Shown piece after piece: positions 11,483 to 60,821 of a stretch of 64,000 nt of DNA. The notes below the pieces were generated by a model, which saw only the letters and a list, made by a program, of their open reading frames with translations, was not told where the DNA came from and did not search any database. Where the stretch lies: sequence record OQ722176.1; one strand, written 5' to 3'. Made by a program: the position numbers and the translations under genes. Numbering within the stretch: the stretch's first letter is position 1; the number at the start of each line of letters is the position of its first letter.

Positions 11483-12400
11483 ATGAAACTGATTGTGACA
11501 GTAGGCGTGCCAGCGTCTGGTAAAACAACATGGGCTGAACAATTCTGTGCAAACGGGAAATCAGTAAACGTGAATCGCGACGATACGCGACAAGAACTAT
11601 TCGGTCCCTTTAAGTGGGGCGAATACAAGTTCGAGAAGAAAAACGAAGAACTTGTGACGAAAGTCAACAAAGACAAAGCTATGCTTGCGCTTCGTCAAGG
11701 TAAAAACGTCGTTATCTCGGATACAAACCTTGTCCCAGAGCGTCGTGAAGAATGGCGTAATATCGCAAAAGAGCTTGGTGCTGAATACGAAGAGAAATTG
11801 TTTCATATCTCTTTCGATGAAGCATTTGCACGCGATAAAGCTCGTGAAATGTCAGTTGGCGGTAAAGTTCTAACGACTATGTTCCAGAACTACCACAAAA
11901 ACAATCGCGAACTTATTATCTCGCACTTTAAAGCTCTTCTTGAACCTCTTTGGGAATCAGGTACTGAGTTATGTGTATTGTCTGACATCGACGGTACAGT
12001 TGCAGAAATGCACAAAGGTGTGAAAGGTCGTCGTAGCCCATTCGAATGGCTTCGTGTTGAAGAAGATTCGCCTCGCGAAACTGTAATCGAAATGCTAGAT
12101 CTTTTAAGCGCACATTACCCAATCATCTTCATGAGTGGTCGTGATGGTATCTGTGAAGAGCATACGAGCCGTTGGCTATCGAAGCACATGCCATTCACAC
12201 ACTCAAGTGGCTTTGATTTGGTAATGCGTAAGAAAGGCGATTCTCGCCCAGATTGGGTAATCAAACTCGAATTGCTGCTAGAATTAGCAAAACGCGGTTT
12301 CCGTCGTCCTGTTGTGATGTTCGATGACCGTGATCAAGTAGTCAATACTCTACGTGAAGTAGGTGTTGAAGTGTTCCAAGTACAACCCGGTAACTTTTAA
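11483..12400 (+). CDS. pseT: Polynucleotide 5'-kinase/3'-phosphatase
   Basis: GVPASGKTT, NRDD, DIDGT, GRDG, FDDRDQVV. Confidence 0.95.
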   Translation: MKLIVTVGVPASGKTTWAEQFCANGKSVNVNRDDTRQELFGPFKWGEYKFEKKNEELVTKVNKDKAMLALRQGKNVVISDTNLVPERREEWRNIAKELGAEYEEKLFHISFDEAFARDKAREMSVGGKVLTTMFQNYHKNNRELIISHFKALLEPLWESGTELCVLSDIDGTVAEMHKGVKGRRSPFEWLRVEEDSPRETVIEMLDLLSAHYPIIFMSGRDGICEEHTSRWLSKHMPFTHSSGFDLVMRKKGDSRPDWVIKLELLLELAKRGFRRPVVMFDDRDQVVNTLREVGVEVFQVQPGNF

Positions 12401-12409
12401 GGTAAAATT

Positions 12410-12949
12410 ATGACTGAAGTATTAATCGCAATCGCTGCAATCGCTGTAGTGGCAATGTTAGTAACAATCGTTCTGCGTGCTCGTAAAGAGCAGAAAGAAG
12501 AAGAAAAGAAAGTTGTTCCTCGTAAAATCGTGACACAAGTCGAGACTCTACGTGAACGTGATGCACAAGCTCTACGTTCTCTAAACGGCTCTGCGTCTGG
12601 TGCTTCGAGCATGAAACCGAAAGTAACTCATACGTCGCGACATTCTGCACCGTCACGACCTAGCGTATCACGTTCTCGTCGTGATGACAGTGACATCATT
12701 ACTAACCCGCTTCACCCGTTGAATCCGATTACAGATCCGTTTGATGTGTACGGTAGCAGCGATTCAGTTCGCGAATCACGCCCTGAGCCAACGCCAGAGC
12801 CGACTCGTTACACTGAACCATCGGGTAGTTACTCGTTCTCTGGGTCTTCAGACAGTGGTTCAAGCTACTCAGGTTCGAGTGATAGTGGCTCTAGTTACTC
12901 AAGCAGTGACAGTAGTTCTTCATCATCTTCAGGCGGGAGCTTTGACTAA
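12410..12949 (+). CDS. Membrane-anchored protein with Ser/Gly-rich tail
   Basis: N-terminal TM; SDSGSSYS repeats. Confidence 0.7.
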   Translation: MTEVLIAIAAIAVVAMLVTIVLRARKEQKEEEKKVVPRKIVTQVETLRERDAQALRSLNGSASGASSMKPKVTHTSRHSAPSRPSVSRSRRDDSDIITNPLHPLNPITDPFDVYGSSDSVRESRPEPTPEPTRYTEPSGSYSFSGSSDSGSSYSGSSDSGSSYSSSDSSSSSSSGGSFD

Positions 12950-49412: not shown

Positions 49413-49934
49413 ATGAAGATTATATTCTTGGATATTGACGGCGTTCTTAACAATTCGTTAGAAGTCGATGAACACAAGGACGTGTTACTTAAAGGTGAGT
49501 ATCAAGGCATTTACTCACCGCGTTGTGTAGAAAGACTTAATGCACTCATAGAAAAGACTAACGCCAGCATTGTACTGACAAGCGTATGGCGTAATGGTCT
49601 TGACCTTGATGAGATTAATCTCTTACTCGACACAATGGGAATCAATGCGAAGTGCATTGGTAAAACTGATAATCTAGATCACAAATACTCATGGGCGTTT
49701 CGTGGCAATGAGATTCTTAAATGGCTCAAAGACAACGAAACACTGCTTGGTATGCATCATTATGATTATCGCAGCTATGTTATCTTAGACGATGACACTG
49801 ATATGCTTTTGTGGCAACGACATAACTATGTCAATTGCGACCATGAGATTGGTATGACTGATCGAACTGTAGCAAGAGCAGCATCAATCTTGAATCACGC
49901 ACCTTGCGTTGATACAGGACAAGAATTTTGTTGA
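49413..49934 (+). CDS. HAD phosphatase (RNA-repair-associated HAD_SAK type)
   Basis: IFLDIDGVLN, LTSVWR, VILDDD. Confidence 0.8.
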   Translation: MKIIFLDIDGVLNNSLEVDEHKDVLLKGEYQGIYSPRCVERLNALIEKTNASIVLTSVWRNGLDLDEINLLLDTMGINAKCIGKTDNLDHKYSWAFRGNEILKWLKDNETLLGMHHYDYRSYVILDDDTDMLLWQRHNYVNCDHEIGMTDRTVARAASILNHAPCVDTGQEFC

Positions 49935-51678: not shown

Positions 51679-52298
51679 CAGGCTACCCATTAGTACATAA
51701 AATGCAAGCAGTTGTACGCTCATGCCAAACCGTTGACCAACTGCTTAACGCAAGAAAGTATCTGTTACAGTGTGACAAATTCGCTGCAACTGCTGAAGAT
51801 GGTCGCGGTTGGTTAGTTGTGACTGAAGCAGTTGACGAACTCGATGCTATTATCACTGATAAACTATGTGAACTGAGTAACGTGCGTGGTATGCGTGCTG
51901 TTGACACTGCCGTTATCAAACTCGGCATTGATATTCATGGCGTAATAGACAAAGCACCAGAATTGTTCACGCTCATTAGTAAGCTACCAGTTGAAGTGCA
52001 TATCATCACTGGCATCAAAGAAGAACTTGACACTGACGTGCCTAGTGATTTAGAATACGACTACTGGTTCTCGATTCATGAGCAATGTGAAATAGATGGT
52101 GTTGAGATCACTTATGATGAACTTAATCGCCCTCACGTTGATCCAGACATCTGGGACAATATGAAAGCACGCTATTGCAAAGAGCAAGGCATTACTATGC
52201 TGATTGATGACTCACCGCATTACGCTAGTACTTTCGAAGGTCTTGATACATTGTATCTTCAACTAACTAACACTAAACGAAATGAGTGGCGCAAATGA
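51675..52298 (+). CDS. Protein with C-terminal HAD-like domain
   Basis: GIDIHGVID, ITG, LIDDS. Confidence 0.55.
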   Translation: MTGYPLVHKMQAVVRSCQTVDQLLNARKYLLQCDKFAATAEDGRGWLVVTEAVDELDAIITDKLCELSNVRGMRAVDTAVIKLGIDIHGVIDKAPELFTLISKLPVEVHIITGIKEELDTDVPSDLEYDYWFSIHEQCEIDGVEITYDELNRPHVDPDIWDNMKARYCKEQGITMLIDDSPHYASTFEGLDTLYLQLTNTKRNEWRK

Positions 52299-52504
52299 AC
52301 GTAGCAAATGTAATGAAAGAACACGCAGCTATCCAAAACGCATTGATTGATTATCTCGATGCTGAATTCGACGGCGAAGGTCATATCGAATATGCAGAGT
52401 ACTTCGAACAAGACGAAGCATGGGACGTGACATACTACGATGGTGAGTTCACGAATGAACTAACTGTAACAGCAACTGCACTTGAGCAATGGATGAACAA
52501 ATGA
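52295..52504 (+). CDS. Small acidic protein, paralog 1
   Basis: M..H..I.NA pattern. Confidence 0.6.
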   Translation: MNVANVMKEHAAIQNALIDYLDAEFDGEGHIEYAEYFEQDEAWDVTYYDGEFTNELTVTATALEQWMNK

Positions 52505-52707
52505 TTGAAAGCACAATGGCTAATCATGAGCTAATCATGAACGCAATTGAGAAGTTCTTGTGCTTGAACTCTGTCCAATACACTGATGTCATTCAATATG
52601 ATAAAGACAATCTCGGCTTCGATGTCGCGATTGTCGAAGAATCCGAGAATGGCACTGAATACACAGACGTGTTCATCCATAACTATCAACTAGAAAAGTA
52701 CCTATGA
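52501..52707 (+). CDS. Small acidic protein, paralog 2
   Basis: M..H..I.NA..YDKD. Confidence 0.6.
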   Translation: MIESTMANHELIMNAIEKFLCLNSVQYTDVIQYDKDNLGFDVAIVEESENGTEYTDVFIHNYQLEKYL

Positions 52708-52955
52708 ATATTAACGATGTAATGCTTCACCACGAGAAGATTACTGACGCATTACATAGCGTTATTAAGCAAAGGACTGCTAATCGAATCGTGTCTATCA
52801 CATATGATAAAGATCGCTATCTGTTTAAGATTGTACTCAGTGCATCTAATAGCTTAGACGATAGCGCCTTTGAATGGAGTATGTGTGTAAGCAATGAAGC
52901 GATAGAAAACCAAATCTATGCGGAGACATTCACATGCAATTACCAGAATACTTGA
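52704..52955 (+). CDS. Small protein, paralog 3
   Basis: M..H..I.DA..YDKD. Confidence 0.6.
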   Translation: MNINDVMLHHEKITDALHSVIKQRTANRIVSITYDKDRYLFKIVLSASNSLDDSAFEWSMCVSNEAIENQIYAETFTCNYQNT

Positions 52956-53107
52956 GCCACATTACTGTAAAAGAAAACGTAATCACTATCGACTCAGCAC
53001 GAGATAAAGTTCTCGTTGTTGACTATCTCACTAATGCAAAAGCTAAGTTCCATATTGTCCAAAAGACAGTTAGCCGTTGCGAAATCCATGTTAAACGTCT
53101 AGGGTAA
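52952..53107 (+). CDS. Small hypothetical protein (51 aa)
   Basis: Manually read TTG-start ORF filling the gap. Confidence 0.4.
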   Translation: MSHITVKENVITIDSARDKVLVVDYLTNAKAKFHIVQKTVSRCEIHVKRLG

Positions 53108-53111
53108 TACA

Positions 53112-53474
53112 ATGAAAGAGCTATTCAACAATCTGTACGATGCACAAACTGAAATCTCAAATCAATTCGGCGAGTGCCATATCTCTAGCCCAATCTACTT
53201 CGAAGAAGATGGTGAGTTCTGTCTGTACAATGACTATCTCGATGTAGCTACAATCAAACCAGAATTCATCGAAGGTCAAACAGATTTCTTAGATAACTTC
53301 CAATTCGTTATCGAACTGATTGATCCATTCGATAATGAATACACATATCGTATGAATAGCTGTACAGTAACAGTATCAAACGACTTAAAGTACTTGCTAA
53401 TCGCTGGCAAAGAATCAAATGATTTCGATGAATCATACGTCGTCCCTCTAGCAAACCTGAGAGCAAAACAATGA
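53112..53474 (+). CDS. Hypothetical acidic protein
   Basis: ORF. Confidence 0.6.
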   Translation: MKELFNNLYDAQTEISNQFGECHISSPIYFEEDGEFCLYNDYLDVATIKPEFIEGQTDFLDNFQFVIELIDPFDNEYTYRMNSCTVTVSNDLKYLLIAGKESNDFDESYVVPLANLRAKQ

Positions 53475-54001
53475 CAGAACCAACACTGACTGACTGGAAC
53501 GAGCTTAAAGACCAAAGCTTAGTGTATCGTATCAATAACGAAATACTACACCCACTCGGCTATGCTGCTGTACTCAATACCGAAACAGGCACAAGTGATC
53601 GCGTACTAATTGCTAATGACGTGTTCGAATTCGCACCAGAAGCTCACAACAAACATAAAAACAATGTCACCATGACTGGCTTACTCGCGACTCATAAAGT
53701 AGTAGAACAACAAATCGCTAGTAAGTTCGGACTGCAAGACATATGGCATAATCTAGTAGACTGTACCGATAAAGTGTTCGTCGCTGATAACTCAGATCTA
53801 GAAAAAGCATATGAGTTCCAATACGCAGATACAGAAAACGAAATCACTGAAGGCGATTGCTATGCAATAGAAGTATACGGCACATCGGTATGGATATCTG
53901 ATGACGAACAGTTCTTACTAACTGCTTGTAACGACGGCTGTGGCAATAGAGATATGTATCTCTTCGCGCTAAAGAATCTATCTAATGTAGAAATGTATTA
54001 G
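53471..54001 (+). CDS. Hypothetical two-part protein
   Basis: ATGA coupling. Confidence 0.6.
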   Translation: MTEPTLTDWNELKDQSLVYRINNEILHPLGYAAVLNTETGTSDRVLIANDVFEFAPEAHNKHKNNVTMTGLLATHKVVEQQIASKFGLQDIWHNLVDCTDKVFVADNSDLEKAYEFQYADTENEITEGDCYAIEVYGTSVWISDDEQFLLTACNDGCGNRDMYLFALKNLSNVEMY

Positions 54002-54012
54002 AAACTTAAAGA

Positions 54013-54048
54013 AAAGGGTTGACAGTAGTCAGCCCTTTCGCGTATCAT
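54013..54048 (+). promoter_or_regulatory. Terminator-promoter fusion cassette
   Basis: AAAGGGTTGAC-AGTA-GTCAGCCCTTT; TTGACA-18-TATCAT. Confidence 0.8.
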
Positions 54049-54078
54049 ACACATATCAAATCAAGAAAGGAAAACATT

Positions 54079-54252
54079 ATGATTGGTCTATCTATTATAA
54101 TACTCGTGTTCGTCGTGATTCTAGCGTTTGACTCAGTTGAAAGCCTAATGAGCAACGAACACCGCATTGGCATGTGTATCTTCCTTGTAGTGTGCGCTGT
54201 CGTTAACGTAGCTAACATGTTTGTTATGCACAAATACGGAGTAATGCTATGA
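54079..54252 (+). CDS. Small two-TM protein
   Basis: SD AAGGA. Confidence 0.6.
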   Translation: MIGLSIIILVFVVILAFDSVESLMSNEHRIGMCIFLVVCAVVNVANMFVMHKYGVML

Positions 54253-54413
54253 GCTTAACAATACTTCTACTCATACTCGTATGCTGTGTAGTACTAACAG
54301 CTATCTGTTTGTTCAGCTTCATCAACAAACCTGGATTTGTTAAACTAATACTCACTGCTGTACTCGGCTTTATCTCATATGTGCTACTACACATCACGGC
54401 TGGTGCATTATGA
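54249..54413 (+). CDS. Small two-TM protein (54 aa)
   Basis: Manually read; ATGA coupling on both sides. Confidence 0.55.
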   Translation: MSLTILLLILVCCVVLTAICLFSFINKPGFVKLILTAVLGFISYVLLHITAGAL

Positions 54414-54592
54414 GCGTGCTATTAATGTTCTTAATCGTTATCGCATGTGCCAGTGTCGTAGTAGCTCTATTCTGTTTTATCATATGCCTATTCGATGATA
54501 ACGAATCAGACAAAGACTCAGACAAAGACAGTAGCTCATTCGCTACTAGAGAATCAATGAACACGTGTATTCGTGTAATGCAATCAATGTGA
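54410..54592 (+). CDS. Small one-TM protein
   Basis: Coupled ORF. Confidence 0.55.
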   Translation: MSVLLMFLIVIACASVVVALFCFIICLFDDNESDKDSDKDSSSFATRESMNTCIRVMQSM

Positions 54593-54599
54593 GAATACT

Positions 54600-54811
54600 A
54601 TGAAACAAACAATCCGTGCTATCTGTATCGACAATCAATCTCATCGTATAGACTTGCCTCAACCACCTAGCGGCTTGACAGAAGGCAAAGAGTACATTGT
54701 CCACATGTATAACGTAAACGAACATACAAACCACCTATGATTCGTATTACTAACGATGACAATCAACGCGCTAGTTACGTCGCTGTACGCTTTAATCTAA
54801 TCATTCAATAG
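54600..54811 (+). pseudogene. Small beta-barrel protein apparently split by a 1-nt deletion near 54728
   Basis: AICIDN..LTEGKEY stops at 54740; MIRITNDD..YVAVRF continues in -1 frame. Confidence 0.4.
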
Positions 54812-54820
54812 GAAATCATT

Positions 54821-55360
54821 ATGAAATTAGTTACTACTACTCGTACAAAACACTATGTCAAGAACTTCGACTACATTCGTATGACAAACGGCGAGAAATG
54901 CCGCATCGGTCATGTCGTACGTACGTTCAGCCCTAAAACAAAAGAACCTATGTTTATCATAGAAGACCAATATTCAGGTCACACAACTCAAATCAAAAAC
55001 ACTATGTGGAACTATGCTATTAGCTTAAATGATGAATGGCATAAAGTACATTTCCATTGGCACGACCGTGATGTGAATGATTCAAATGTCCTAGTATACT
55101 ACAAAACAAAAGAAACAGTAGATGAACTCAGTGTAGGAGATGTGCTTCGATTACGTACACGTCGATTCAAAGATAAAGAGTACCATTACAGTGATGAACT
55201 ATATGACGCGACAATCGTACTAATGAATCGCACTCAATTAGTCGTAAGCGTGTCAGGCAAGTTCGTGACGTTCGATACCACAAAATTCCAATATGATAGC
55301 TATACTGCGGATATAGACGGCAAATTTGTTTTCGATAGTGGCTGTTCACTGCGTGCGTAA
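54821..55360 (+). CDS. Hypothetical protein, paralog of 55877 gene
   Basis: ELSVGDV..DATIVL..QLVV. Confidence 0.65.
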   Translation: MKLVTTTRTKHYVKNFDYIRMTNGEKCRIGHVVRTFSPKTKEPMFIIEDQYSGHTTQIKNTMWNYAISLNDEWHKVHFHWHDRDVNDSNVLVYYKTKETVDELSVGDVLRLRTRRFKDKEYHYSDELYDATIVLMNRTQLVVSVSGKFVTFDTTKFQYDSYTADIDGKFVFDSGCSLRA

Positions 55361-55451
55361 AACCGCTTAGAATCGCGCTCAGAGCGTGTCAGAGCATGGT
55401 ACGTTATTGATTAAAACTGATATATCGCACCATGCCTCGTTTAAAAGCACA

Positions 55452-55559
55452 TGTGCATAAATCTGTGGATAAGATGTGTGTAAAACTGTGCATAAGTTAT
55501 TAAAATTGTGGATAAAATACAGATTTTCGTGTGGATAAGTCTGTGGATTACGTGGATAA
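55452..55559 (-). repeat. Array of 8 co-oriented DnaA boxes
   Basis: TGTGGATAA at 55464, 55507, 55530; TGTGCATAA at 55452, 55487; TGTGTAAAA at 55477; 1-mismatch boxes at 55542, 55551. Confidence 0.88.
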
Positions 55560-55730
55560 GTTTTTGGTGTCAAAAATCGGTGATGTCTCATCGGCTCCTG
55601 TGTAGTAAAATGCAGTTGCGGATGGTACTTGCCTCGTGAAAATCTAATCCGCTTCGCATCTTTCTGCTTGACATGCAATGCCATCCTGTGAGAGAATGAG
55701 AAGCCAACTGAACCACCTTGGGAGGGTGAT

Positions 55731-55877
55731 ATGATTACATTAGCGTTGTTCTATATGAGCCGCGACATGAGTTACAGTGAGCGACCAAGTGATTTATATC
55801 TTGGTACGTGTATTTTAGACTTAGCCATGATTATAGTGGCGTTCTGTGGTATGATGATGTTTACGGGAAATTGGTAA
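55731..55877 (+). CDS. Small membrane protein (48 aa)
   Basis: SD GGAGG; TAATG coupling to next gene. Confidence 0.55.
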   Translation: MITLALFYMSRDMSYSERPSDLYLGTCILDLAMIIVAFCGMMMFTGNW

Positions 55878-56491
55878 TGATTAGTATTGAGTTACACAAG
55901 AAAGTAGTAGAGAAGAAAGCAGTATTGCCAGATCAAGCAATGGTGCGAATCGAGACGTATTACCGTTCGTTGAGTGGTTATATGAACTTCATTGATTCGA
56001 GTCATCAAATTCGTGGTGTTACTGATGGTACATATATGCTTGTTACTGAAGATGGTGCATTCTTTAACATAGAGAAAGACCGTGTGAATGGTGATAAGCA
56101 GACACGTGAAAAGCACGATGGTCAGCTTGTAGCGGTACATGCGCGATTAGCCTTGCCTGCGAAAGATTGGGATTGGTATCCATGTAAGTGGAAAAGCGGT
56201 CGTCTTGTCTATGAGTATAAAGAGCAAGATTTCGTAGAAGAGAAACACGAGCTAGTGGTTGGTGAGATAGTAGACATTTTTGCCGCTGACGATGAGTATG
56301 CCGAAGCGCCAGTTGATGCAACTGTAGTGTTGAGTCGTCCGGGACAGATTGTAGTAGAGCGTGATGGTGTATTGGTTGCTTTCAACATTGACAATATGCG
56401 TTCGTCTGGTAATATTGTATCTGACTGTGGTGATCATCTACTAGTGGGTAAGTTTGCCGTAAGCGAATACGACGAAGAACTTCATTCGTAA
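55877..56491 (+). CDS. Hypothetical protein, paralog of 54821 gene
   Basis: ELVVGEI..DATVVL..QIVV. Confidence 0.65.
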   Translation: MISIELHKKVVEKKAVLPDQAMVRIETYYRSLSGYMNFIDSSHQIRGVTDGTYMLVTEDGAFFNIEKDRVNGDKQTREKHDGQLVAVHARLALPAKDWDWYPCKWKSGRLVYEYKEQDFVEEKHELVVGEIVDIFAADDEYAEAPVDATVVLSRPGQIVVERDGVLVAFNIDNMRSSGNIVSDCGDHLLVGKFAVSEYDEELHS

Positions 56492-56502
56492 AAAGTTGAA
56501 GA

Positions 56503-56538
56503 AAAGGGTTGACGAGTGTCAGCCCTTTCTTGTATTAT
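56503..56538 (+). promoter_or_regulatory. Terminator-promoter fusion cassette
   Basis: AAAGGGTTGAC-GAGT-GTCAGCCCTTT; TTGACG-18-TATTAT. Confidence 0.8.
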
Positions 56539-56579
56539 CTCTATATCGAAACGACATCGACTAACAGAGAGAGAATATT

Positions 56580-56939
56580 ATGTTTTTTAACGCAGCTAAA
56601 GCACTAAACGATCTTACGCAATCGAAACACGGTCATTCACGTCTTGTTGCCATGACTGGTGCTAAGAACTTGCTTCAATCGCCTGAAGGTCGATTTGTTT
56701 CATTTCGTTTGCCGAAAGCAGTACGTGGTATTAACTACGTGAAAATCACGTTGAACAGCCAAGACTTGTATGATGTTGAGTTTGGTAAAGTCTCGAACAA
56801 AGCTTGTCCAGAAATGAAAAAGCTTGGTATTAAAGTGATGCTGCCGAATTACGAAGTGAAAACAGTAGTCGAAGGCGTGTACAATGACTCATTGAAAGCA
56901 TGTTTTGAGCGTGAAACTACACTTTTATTGTCACTTTAA
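56580..56939 (+). CDS. Hypothetical early protein
   Basis: GAGAGAATATTATG leader. Confidence 0.7.
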   Translation: MFFNAAKALNDLTQSKHGHSRLVAMTGAKNLLQSPEGRFVSFRLPKAVRGINYVKITLNSQDLYDVEFGKVSNKACPEMKKLGIKVMLPNYEVKTVVEGVYNDSLKACFERETTLLLSL

Positions 56940-60360: not shown

Positions 60361-60507
60361 ATGTATGCCATACGTCCGTGTTTCAATGGCTTTCTCTGGA
60401 AAGTCGTTATATTCGCGAACAACTATGACCGCGGTACAATCTCGTATCACTTCACCAGAGCAGGCGCATATAACTTGTGCAAGCAACTTAACGAGGACAG
60501 ACAATGA
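60361..60507 (+). CDS. Small hypothetical protein (48 aa)
   Basis: Manually read; coupled. Confidence 0.45.
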   Translation: MYAIRPCFNGFLWKVVIFANNYDRGTISYHFTRAGAYNLCKQLNEDRQ

Positions 60508-60821
60508 GCCAAATGGAATACAATAAAGGCATTCTACATCTTGTGGATAAGTCTGTGGATAAACTTGCTGAAGAGTTAGTAAGTGATTCTGACTTGCCGT
60601 ATTGGTGTGAGACCAAGCTTGAATATCTACGGGAAAACTCAGAAGAGTTCGGGTTGGTTTTTATCAAAGATCTTTGTTACCGTGTAACGTTTGAAAACGA
60701 GCGTGAAGATCTGTATCAGATTGCCAGAGCCGAAGTTCAGCCGAATGGTGATATTCACTTTGAGACGTATCATTATAATGGTGGTGCTCACTGGACAGAA
60801 GTTGTAGAGGGTGCGTTATGA
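60504..60821 (+). CDS. Hypothetical protein containing a tandem DnaA-box pair
   Basis: SD GAGGA; YNGGAHW. Confidence 0.65.
   Translation: MSQMEYNKGILHLVDKSVDKLAEELVSDSDLPYWCETKLEYLRENSEEFGLVFIKDLCYRVTFENEREDLYQIARAEVQPNGDIHFETYHYNGGAHWTEVVEGAL

Follow-up and report, generated by a model that had tools for sequence, protein, structure and literature searches.

The locus described here raises the question of why the strand composition of a phage genome should invert between neighboring genes that are all read from the same strand. It lies in a stretch of 64,000 nucleotides (nt), hereafter the window, of record OQ722176.1, which is the 250,514 bp genome of Vibrio phage vB_VspM_VS2 (VS2; Schizotequatrovirus, a KVP40-like T4-type myovirus) and carries no annotation. 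Coordinates are those of the window unless a genome-wide scale is named, and adding 124000 gives the position in the record. The center of the locus is an intergenic gap of 370 nt (55361-55730), which contains an array of DnaA boxes, is alignable end to end in eight phages and is the point where the bias of the silent sites changes sign. The original prediction was that the G/C skew flips across the DnaA boxes while all genes stay on the plus strand, and that this supports a real replication origin near 55.4-55.6 kilobases (kb).

The flip is real and much too large to be due to chance. It had been proposed from six 60-nt rows counted by hand, and all six counts were exact on recount; as a sample, the right-hand rows were typical, but the left-hand rows (G-C of -7, -6 and -7) were not a fair choice, since they are among the five most negative. 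The 26 rows of the left side (53461-54961) show a mean G-C of -1.7 and the 15 rows of the right side (55441-56281) a mean of +6.9, in relation to a mean of +1.5 and a standard deviation of 4.4 per row across the window. A step scan, in which the skew of the left interval of length W was subtracted from the skew of the right one at approximately 4,900 positions genome-wide, ranks the locus first, with upward GC-skew steps of 0.35, 0.29 and 0.23 at W = 1000, 1500 and 2500, respectively, whereas the next independent peaks reach 0.20, 0.18 and 0.15. At W = 5000 the locus is second, behind a true gene-strand switch at 25 kb. Furthermore, the AT skew falls at the same point at which the GC skew rises. 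The GC-skew flip is therefore confirmed, and is stronger than the hand counts could reveal.

The signal is carried by positions that do not alter the proteins. At fourfold-degenerate sites, the background composition of the genome is G.17, C.12, A.30 and T.41. The 3 kb on the left of the gap (52361-55360) show G.11, C.18, A.42 and T.29, which is approximately the complement of the background, while the 2 kb on the right show G.19, C.07, A.31 and T.43, which is the background exaggerated; across seven phages, the right-hand values range between.16-.20 for G,.04-.11 for C,.23-.31 for A and.43-.55 for T. The plus strand is thus rich in C and A on the left and rich in G and T on the right, and the signs of both the GC and the AT skew at silent sites are of the origin type. 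Exposed single-stranded DNA suffers deamination, which leads to C>T and A>G changes. All four bases shift as predicted if the minus strand was the exposed one on the left and the plus strand on the right.

The left block (52704-55360), which comprises about nine small plus-strand genes of unknown function whose silent-site composition is inverted, is the top outlier among 394 blocks of the genome (z of about +3.3 to +3.6), and shows the largest deviation in relative synonymous codon usage among all blocks of ten genes. A weaker negative skew at third codon positions (GC3 skew) reaches back to approximately 49.9 kb. The last gene of the left side (54821-55360, plus strand) encodes a 179-residue protein of unknown function (phrog_32648) and has a GC3 skew of -0.35. 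On the right side, the first gene (55731-55877, plus strand; 48 residues, phrog_16778) has a GC3 skew of +0.30, and the first large gene (55877-56491, plus strand; 204 residues, phrog_13976, unknown function) has an overall GC skew of +0.30 and is the most extreme G/T-ending gene among the 120 genes with at least 200 codons, with the highest score on the second principal component of codon usage (+2.69). The genes at 54821-55360 and 55877-56491 are distant paralogs (BLASTP, 36% identity over 69 residues, E-value 2e-5) with opposite third-position skews, and the product of the former also shows a weak match to phrog_13976.

Simple causes do not account for the flip. That the left block might in fact be encoded on the minus strand was ruled out by substitution rates in relation to six relatives: 13 of the 14 plus-strand open reading frames (ORFs) between 52.3 and 56.9 kb show the order third > first > second codon position (the remaining one, 54410-54592, has only 14 aligned sites), and no antisense ORF of this interval shows such a pattern. 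The claim that all genes lie on the plus strand on both sides thus holds locally. The minus-strand ORF at 55379-55684 (101 residues; QD01_174 in the phage QD01), which overlaps the DnaA array, has rates of 0.18, 0.22 and 0.16 without codon periodicity, and is probably not a gene. Amino-acid composition, which the original prediction had named as a possible refutation, does not explain the flip, because the flip is strongest at fourfold-degenerate sites. The G-rich letters of the boxes alone could not make the step either, as an analysis restricted to third positions, which omits the gap, still flips.

Translational selection was also rejected as the main cause. The main axis of codon usage (first principal component, PC1) looks expression-related by its codon loadings, which oppose optimal and rare codons, and the left block has a PC1 projection of -0.17, with only 0.2% of its codon deviation on this axis. 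For glycine, the left block prefers GGC (.55) over GGT, the codon used elsewhere in the genome, which is enriched towards low PC1 values, and in every A/G family of the block A-ending codons replace G-ending ones. The T-to-C shift at third positions of the left block is strong after a G or T at the second codon position (GGC, TTC, ATC, CTC, GTC, TGC and AGC) and absent after A or C (GAY, TAY, AAY, CAY, GCN, ACN, CCN and TCN). Codons of the form NCC are uncommon throughout (.08 or less), with the exception of GCC in the right block (.12).

The same third-position flip, anchored on the gap, is found in KVP40, phi-pp2, nt-1 (which belongs to another genus), phi-ST2, VH7D and phi-Grn1; for KVP40, the DNA covered was a segment of 24.5 kb that contains the locus, together with the first 50 kb. 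In these relatives the GC3 skew on the left is -0.3 to -0.46 over approximately 3 kb, weaker to approximately 5 kb, and on the right it is +0.26 to +0.54 over 1-3 kb, with the AT skew at third positions as its mirror. In nt-1 and CZ01, an extra gene encoding 176 residues (ORF037 of nt-1), unrelated to the genes flanking the gap in VS2, is inserted between the DnaA array and the 48-residue gene. The nt-1 ORF037 (12292-12822 of the nt-1 segment), which thus lies on the right of the array, has a right-type composition with a keto index of +0.31. This non-homologous gene and the paralogs with opposite skews support an effect of position over one of gene identity.

Substitutions were polarized in three trios (VS2/VS1/QD01, phi-ST2/VH7D/phi-Grn1 and KVP40/phi-pp2/PG216). 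The left block shows 87 amino-to-keto and 98 keto-to-amino substitutions, whereas background per-site rates predict an amino-to-keto share of 0.647 (binomial p = 1e-6), and the three clades behave alike. As the left block lacks the amino-to-keto excess that background rates predict, its inverted bias is being maintained at present, and a horizontal import whose foreign composition is fading was rejected.

Inside the gap, the DnaA-box array (55452-55559, minus strand) contains seven boxes in the same orientation within 108 nt: five agree with TTATNCACA and the other two differ from it by one mismatch, with start-to-start spacings of 12, 23, 20, 23, 12 and 9 nt. The genome contains 21 TTATNCACA sites, of which five belong to the array and two are located at 60542 and 60554, and the array is the sole cluster in 250 kb. 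Box positions are conserved in VS2, QD01, phi-ST2, VH7D, phi-Grn1 and nt-1. Among these six phages, 3 of 56 columns are variable in the box cores in relation to 24 of 53 in the spacers (Fisher p = 1e-6), and the N position of the box varies like a spacer (3/7). By this alignment, purifying selection acts on the box cores of the six phages that carry the array, and since the footprint of variability fits the DnaA-box consensus, DnaA binding at the array is very likely selected. In KVP40 and phi-pp2, the length of the gap and its flanks are kept, but all seven boxes are destroyed in the stretch that aligns with 55447-55562 (12090-12220 of the KVP40 segment), which looks like a loss in the KVP40 species lineage by divergence or replacement.

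Other elements of the gap are a conserved block (55565-55660) and, on the plus strand, a match to an early-type sigma-70-like promoter (55668-55697), with TTGACA, an 18-nt spacer, GAGAAT and an upstream TG, predicted from its consensus match only. This promoter match is kept in seven of the eight aligned phages and reads into the G/T-rich right block. An imperfect inverted repeat (55394-55435), with 14-nt arms that are 86% complementary and a 14-nt AT-rich loop (55408-55421), lies in strongly conserved blocks; its sequence is conserved and, judged by eye, its pairing is lost in nt-1 and phi-pp2, so that comparison of the sequences does not support a structural role. No Rfam family matched in the gap.

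In the genome as a whole, plus and minus genes do not differ in fourfold-site composition when each is read in its own direction (about G.17, C.12, A.30 and T.41). It is thus the coding strand, and not the direction of the fork, that the large-scale skew follows, and an inversion between genes of the same strand needs a second, opposing process. A polarity such as the one observed between same-strand genes has only two ordinary causes, bidirectional forks or divergent transcription. As no leftward promoter was found in the gap and the polarity expected from end resection is the wrong one, we favor bidirectional initiation, and we give a probability of roughly 0.45 to the gap at 55361-55730 being a short-range bidirectional replication initiation zone, as judged from the sequence. 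The original prediction is partly supported: the sign of the skew, its silent-site nature and its co-location with the DnaA array agree with the origin placed near 55.4-55.6 kb by the original prediction; the scale of the bias is not global, and the boxes are dispensable for it.

According to this proposal, forks or strand-displacement synthesis would exit the gap in both directions and would dominate replication for the nearest few kb only. On the right, the plus strand would be exposed as the lagging-strand template, losing C and A and gaining T and G; on the left, the minus strand would be exposed, so that the plus strand would lose G and T and gain A and C. The fork-linked bias would override the coding-strand bias and invert the silent sites of the head-on genes, and it would fade with distance if, as in T4-type phages, most replication is recombination-primed and the direction of forks becomes random. 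The predicted promoter at 55668, which is conserved and reads into the gene with the most G-rich non-template strand of the genome, would probably provide an R-loop primer in the manner of T4 origins. Upstream of it, the array of host DnaA boxes may be an accessory under selection in most lineages, perhaps in opening or timing, which the KVP40 lineage would do without. We infer replication as the cause of the bias, and likewise the R-loop and any role of DnaA. The fuller claim, that KVP40-like phages have a highly active short-range bidirectional origin which is readable from silent sites and, in most lineages, recruits host DnaA through the conserved seven boxes, seems to us doubtful.

The proposal fits three features of the setting, read from gene order and homology: the DnaA array at the flip point, the interval between nrdC.11 and tk, which is that of oriC in T4, and the presence in KVP40 of a full T4-type replisome (gp43, 44/62, 45, 41, 61, the helicase loader 59, 32 and Dda). 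A review of T4 lists five early origins and places oriC near rI.-1 (PMC3016281). In T4, rI.-1 lies between nrdC.11 and tk, so that oriC and the KVP40-like locus share a syntenic interval, and the type of replisome is also the same. At T4 oriF and oriG, a transcript primes the leading strand through an R-loop (PMC3016281), and the promoter predicted at 55668 likewise reads into the adjacent region; the T4 origins differ in having no DnaA boxes and no sequence homology to the VS2 locus. At T4 oriE, 12-nt iterons lie at even distances next to an early promoter and are conserved among related phages (PMC3016281). The 9-mers of VS2 resemble them in their single orientation, in their spacing of mostly 12 or approximately 23 nt and in their location upstream of an early-type promoter; however, they are boxes for host DnaA, and their selection footprint fits this, while the T4 iterons have no known binding partner or role.

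Several observations weigh against an initiation zone in the gap. A cumulative-skew minimum near 55.5 kb, as an origin would predict, is present as a local minimum, but there is no global minimum there. Near the locus, the raw cumulative G-C climbs to a local maximum at 49878 and then falls to a local minimum at 55002, and within the 64-kb window the minima of the third-position cumulative G-C and of the raw keto (G+T-A-C) cumulative curve fall at 55342 and 55324, respectively; both are only local on the genome-wide scale. The whole-genome cumulative G-C is lowest at 24.8 kb and highest at 243.5 kb, and both points are gene-strand switches. The locus thus shows neither a replichore-long bias nor a global extreme of cumulative skew: the bias is gone leftward within 3-5 kb and rightward within approximately 2 kb. 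To our knowledge, a skew signature of such short range is unlike that of any characterized origin, and its decay with distance through recombination-primed replication is an explanation that we infer. The substitution process of the right block does not differ significantly from the background (p = 0.33), and the anomaly is therefore mainly one-sided. In KVP40 and phi-pp2, the flip is present and maintained without any DnaA box, so the bias does not stem from the boxes. GATC sites are absent between 55300 and 55800, and no unwinding element stands out, the least stable 80-120 nt being the array itself, which ranks no better than within the top 1% of the window.

A mapped origin of T4 does not leave this mark either. 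T4 oriA and oriC are outside the skew shifts (PMC3016281). In agreement with this, the third-position profile of T4 between 40 and 70 kb shows no inversion near rI.-1. The DNA of T4 carries modified cytosine, and T4 is therefore a weak and imperfect control.

Transcription could produce the same polarity as an origin without replication, if an unrecognized leftward promoter in the gap drove strong antisense transcription, or R-loops, over the left block, so that its minus strand was exposed, and the promoter at 55668 exposed the plus strand of the right block. The coding-strand bias of the whole genome indicates that an asymmetry of the transcription type operates in this phage, and a short range would be natural for a transcription unit. 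The right block, moreover, has a conserved promoter immediately in front of it and stops at a terminator-like hairpin (56503-56538, plus strand), which is overlapped by an early-type promoter and closes the strongly skewed right-hand unit. We nevertheless hold this explanation to be unlikely: neither a minus-strand sigma-70-like promoter in the gap nor a TATAAATA late promoter within 10 kb of it was found, the minus-strand ORF at 55379-55684 is non-coding by periodicity, and antisense transcription would have to outweigh sense transcription from the left genes' own plus-strand promoters at 52027 and 54019. About equally improbable is selection on the local genes or their mRNAs, which might be G/U-poor, unstructured, averse to R-loops or of a special expression class, with boxes that titrate DnaA or regulate the promoter at 55668. 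Clusters of DnaA boxes outside origins are known in bacteria, such as datA, and here the boxes have been lost without losing the bias, which is actively maintained. The T-to-C shift, moreover, depends on the codon family, being strong for glycine, phenylalanine, isoleucine, leucine, cysteine and the AGY codons of serine and absent for aspartate, tyrosine, asparagine and histidine. Selection of this kind does not predict a change of sign exactly at one gap with mirror symmetry in four bases; the deviation is off the expression axis, the shift from G-ending to A-ending codons occurs in every A/G family, and unrelated genes match the composition of their side.

A physical end of the DNA, a pac site or another, would place the flip at a point of end-associated processing. 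Independent GenBank records, with at least four isolate assemblies among them, start or end in the gap (PVA8, PC-Liy1 and PVA23 at approximately 55627, R10Z and R11Z at approximately 55656), among which PVA8 and PVA23 are plain SOAPdenovo assemblies with no rotation reported; in two runs, public (Logan) contigs begin at 55624 and 55642, and one KVP40-like phage was classed by PhageTerm as 'headful (pac)', with the site not stated. By our reasoning, however, 5'-to-3' resection would expose the wrong strands and give the opposite polarity, the T4-type terminase genes are far away, and a border where variable sequence meets conserved sequence can account for contigs that break in mixed samples, so that we regard a physical end as very unlikely. 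A repeat as the cause of assembly breaks was rejected, since the gap is unique within the genome. The records of V09, TCU_VP02_YC and TCU-VP04-AIR2 end within approximately 1.2 kb of the ends in the gap (55618-55656). These latter could reflect a physical end or pac site, a drop in coverage or a variable/conserved boundary. Hardly credible, finally, is a historical accident in which a left block imported with foreign codon usage merely abuts a G-rich gene. Gene content is indeed variable among the relatives, and 30-55% of a 4-kb query aligns in KVP40 and phi-pp2; but seven phages from two genera share the composition, even though most left-block genes differ between them at 34-45% of third positions (18% in the last left gene), and the substitution flux in the left block shows no drift towards the background (p = 1e-6).

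The proposed initiation zone can also be compared with systems that employ DnaA. It resembles the bacterial oriC of E. coli and of Vibrio cholerae chromosome 1 in its dense, one-orientation TTATNCACA boxes and in the change of skew from C to G; it differs from them in having neither GATC sites nor a clear AT-rich 13-mer unwinding element, in the local scale of its skew change, in belonging to a lytic phage with its own helicase loader and in the persistence of the flip in box-less relatives. Host DnaA boxes serve mobile elements (P1 oriR, pSC101, F and R6K) or act as sinks outside origins (datA). Neither a Rep gene nor Rep iterons were identified beside the VS2 array, unlike in those mobile elements, and we know of no local inversion of codon bias in any of P1 oriR, pSC101, F, R6K or datA. 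Arrays of DnaA boxes are not rare in viral contigs: at least five boxes within 150 nt were found in 14 of the 118 IMG/VR loci that bear a box doublet, and the doublet matches belong to many unrelated contigs. For KVP40-like phages, a literature search on DnaA boxes or replication origins found nothing relevant, and a search of public sequencing runs yielded only assembled contigs of relatives at a low share and no RNA run.

Origins of the T4 type are known only from T4, share no common motif and are not predictable in relatives (PMC3016281). If it is an origin, the VS2 locus would be the first of the T4 superfamily definable from sequence alone and, if it also recruits host DnaA, the first demonstrated case of DnaA use in a lytic T4-type phage. 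Other large lytic phages could then be searched for a signature in which the strand bias of silent sites inverts locally between same-strand genes, and the fork direction, rather than transcription or translation, would set codon usage over a few kb. Phages with boxes (VS2, nt-1 and phi-ST2) and without them (KVP40 and phi-pp2) would furthermore offer a natural comparison for the role of DnaA beside a phage's own replisome. If the locus is not an origin, something else must account for the strongest codon-bias anomaly of the genome, for example antisense transcription, R-loops or DNA ends.

In the annotated relatives QD01 (PV785814.1) and KVP40, the neighbors of the locus are almost all small hypothetical genes on the plus strand, and QD01_174 is the sole minus-strand coding sequence (CDS) near it. 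The locus falls between genes.0172 and.0173 of KVP40, with nrdC.11, a Dda-like helicase gene and natV upstream and tk and denV downstream. On the right, the hairpin and its overlapping promoter are part of an element (56487-56585) that recurs at several places in the genomes of relatives, as judged by multiple blastn matches, and looks like a repeated promoter/terminator cassette between early genes. No tRNA genes were detected within the 64-kb window. Outside the window, at approximately 5-15 kb of record OQ722176.1, a crude gene set shows a very low ORF coverage and a large codon-usage deviation, and this region is possibly a cluster of tRNA genes or a non-coding one. A second pair of DnaA boxes (60542-60562, minus strand), with two perfect boxes 12 nt apart inside the CDS at 60504-60821, includes 19 nt identical to 55530-55548 and is absent at that offset in the six relatives scanned. 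Just downstream of this pair the GC skew climbs, reaching 0.28 at 60.6-61.0 kb.

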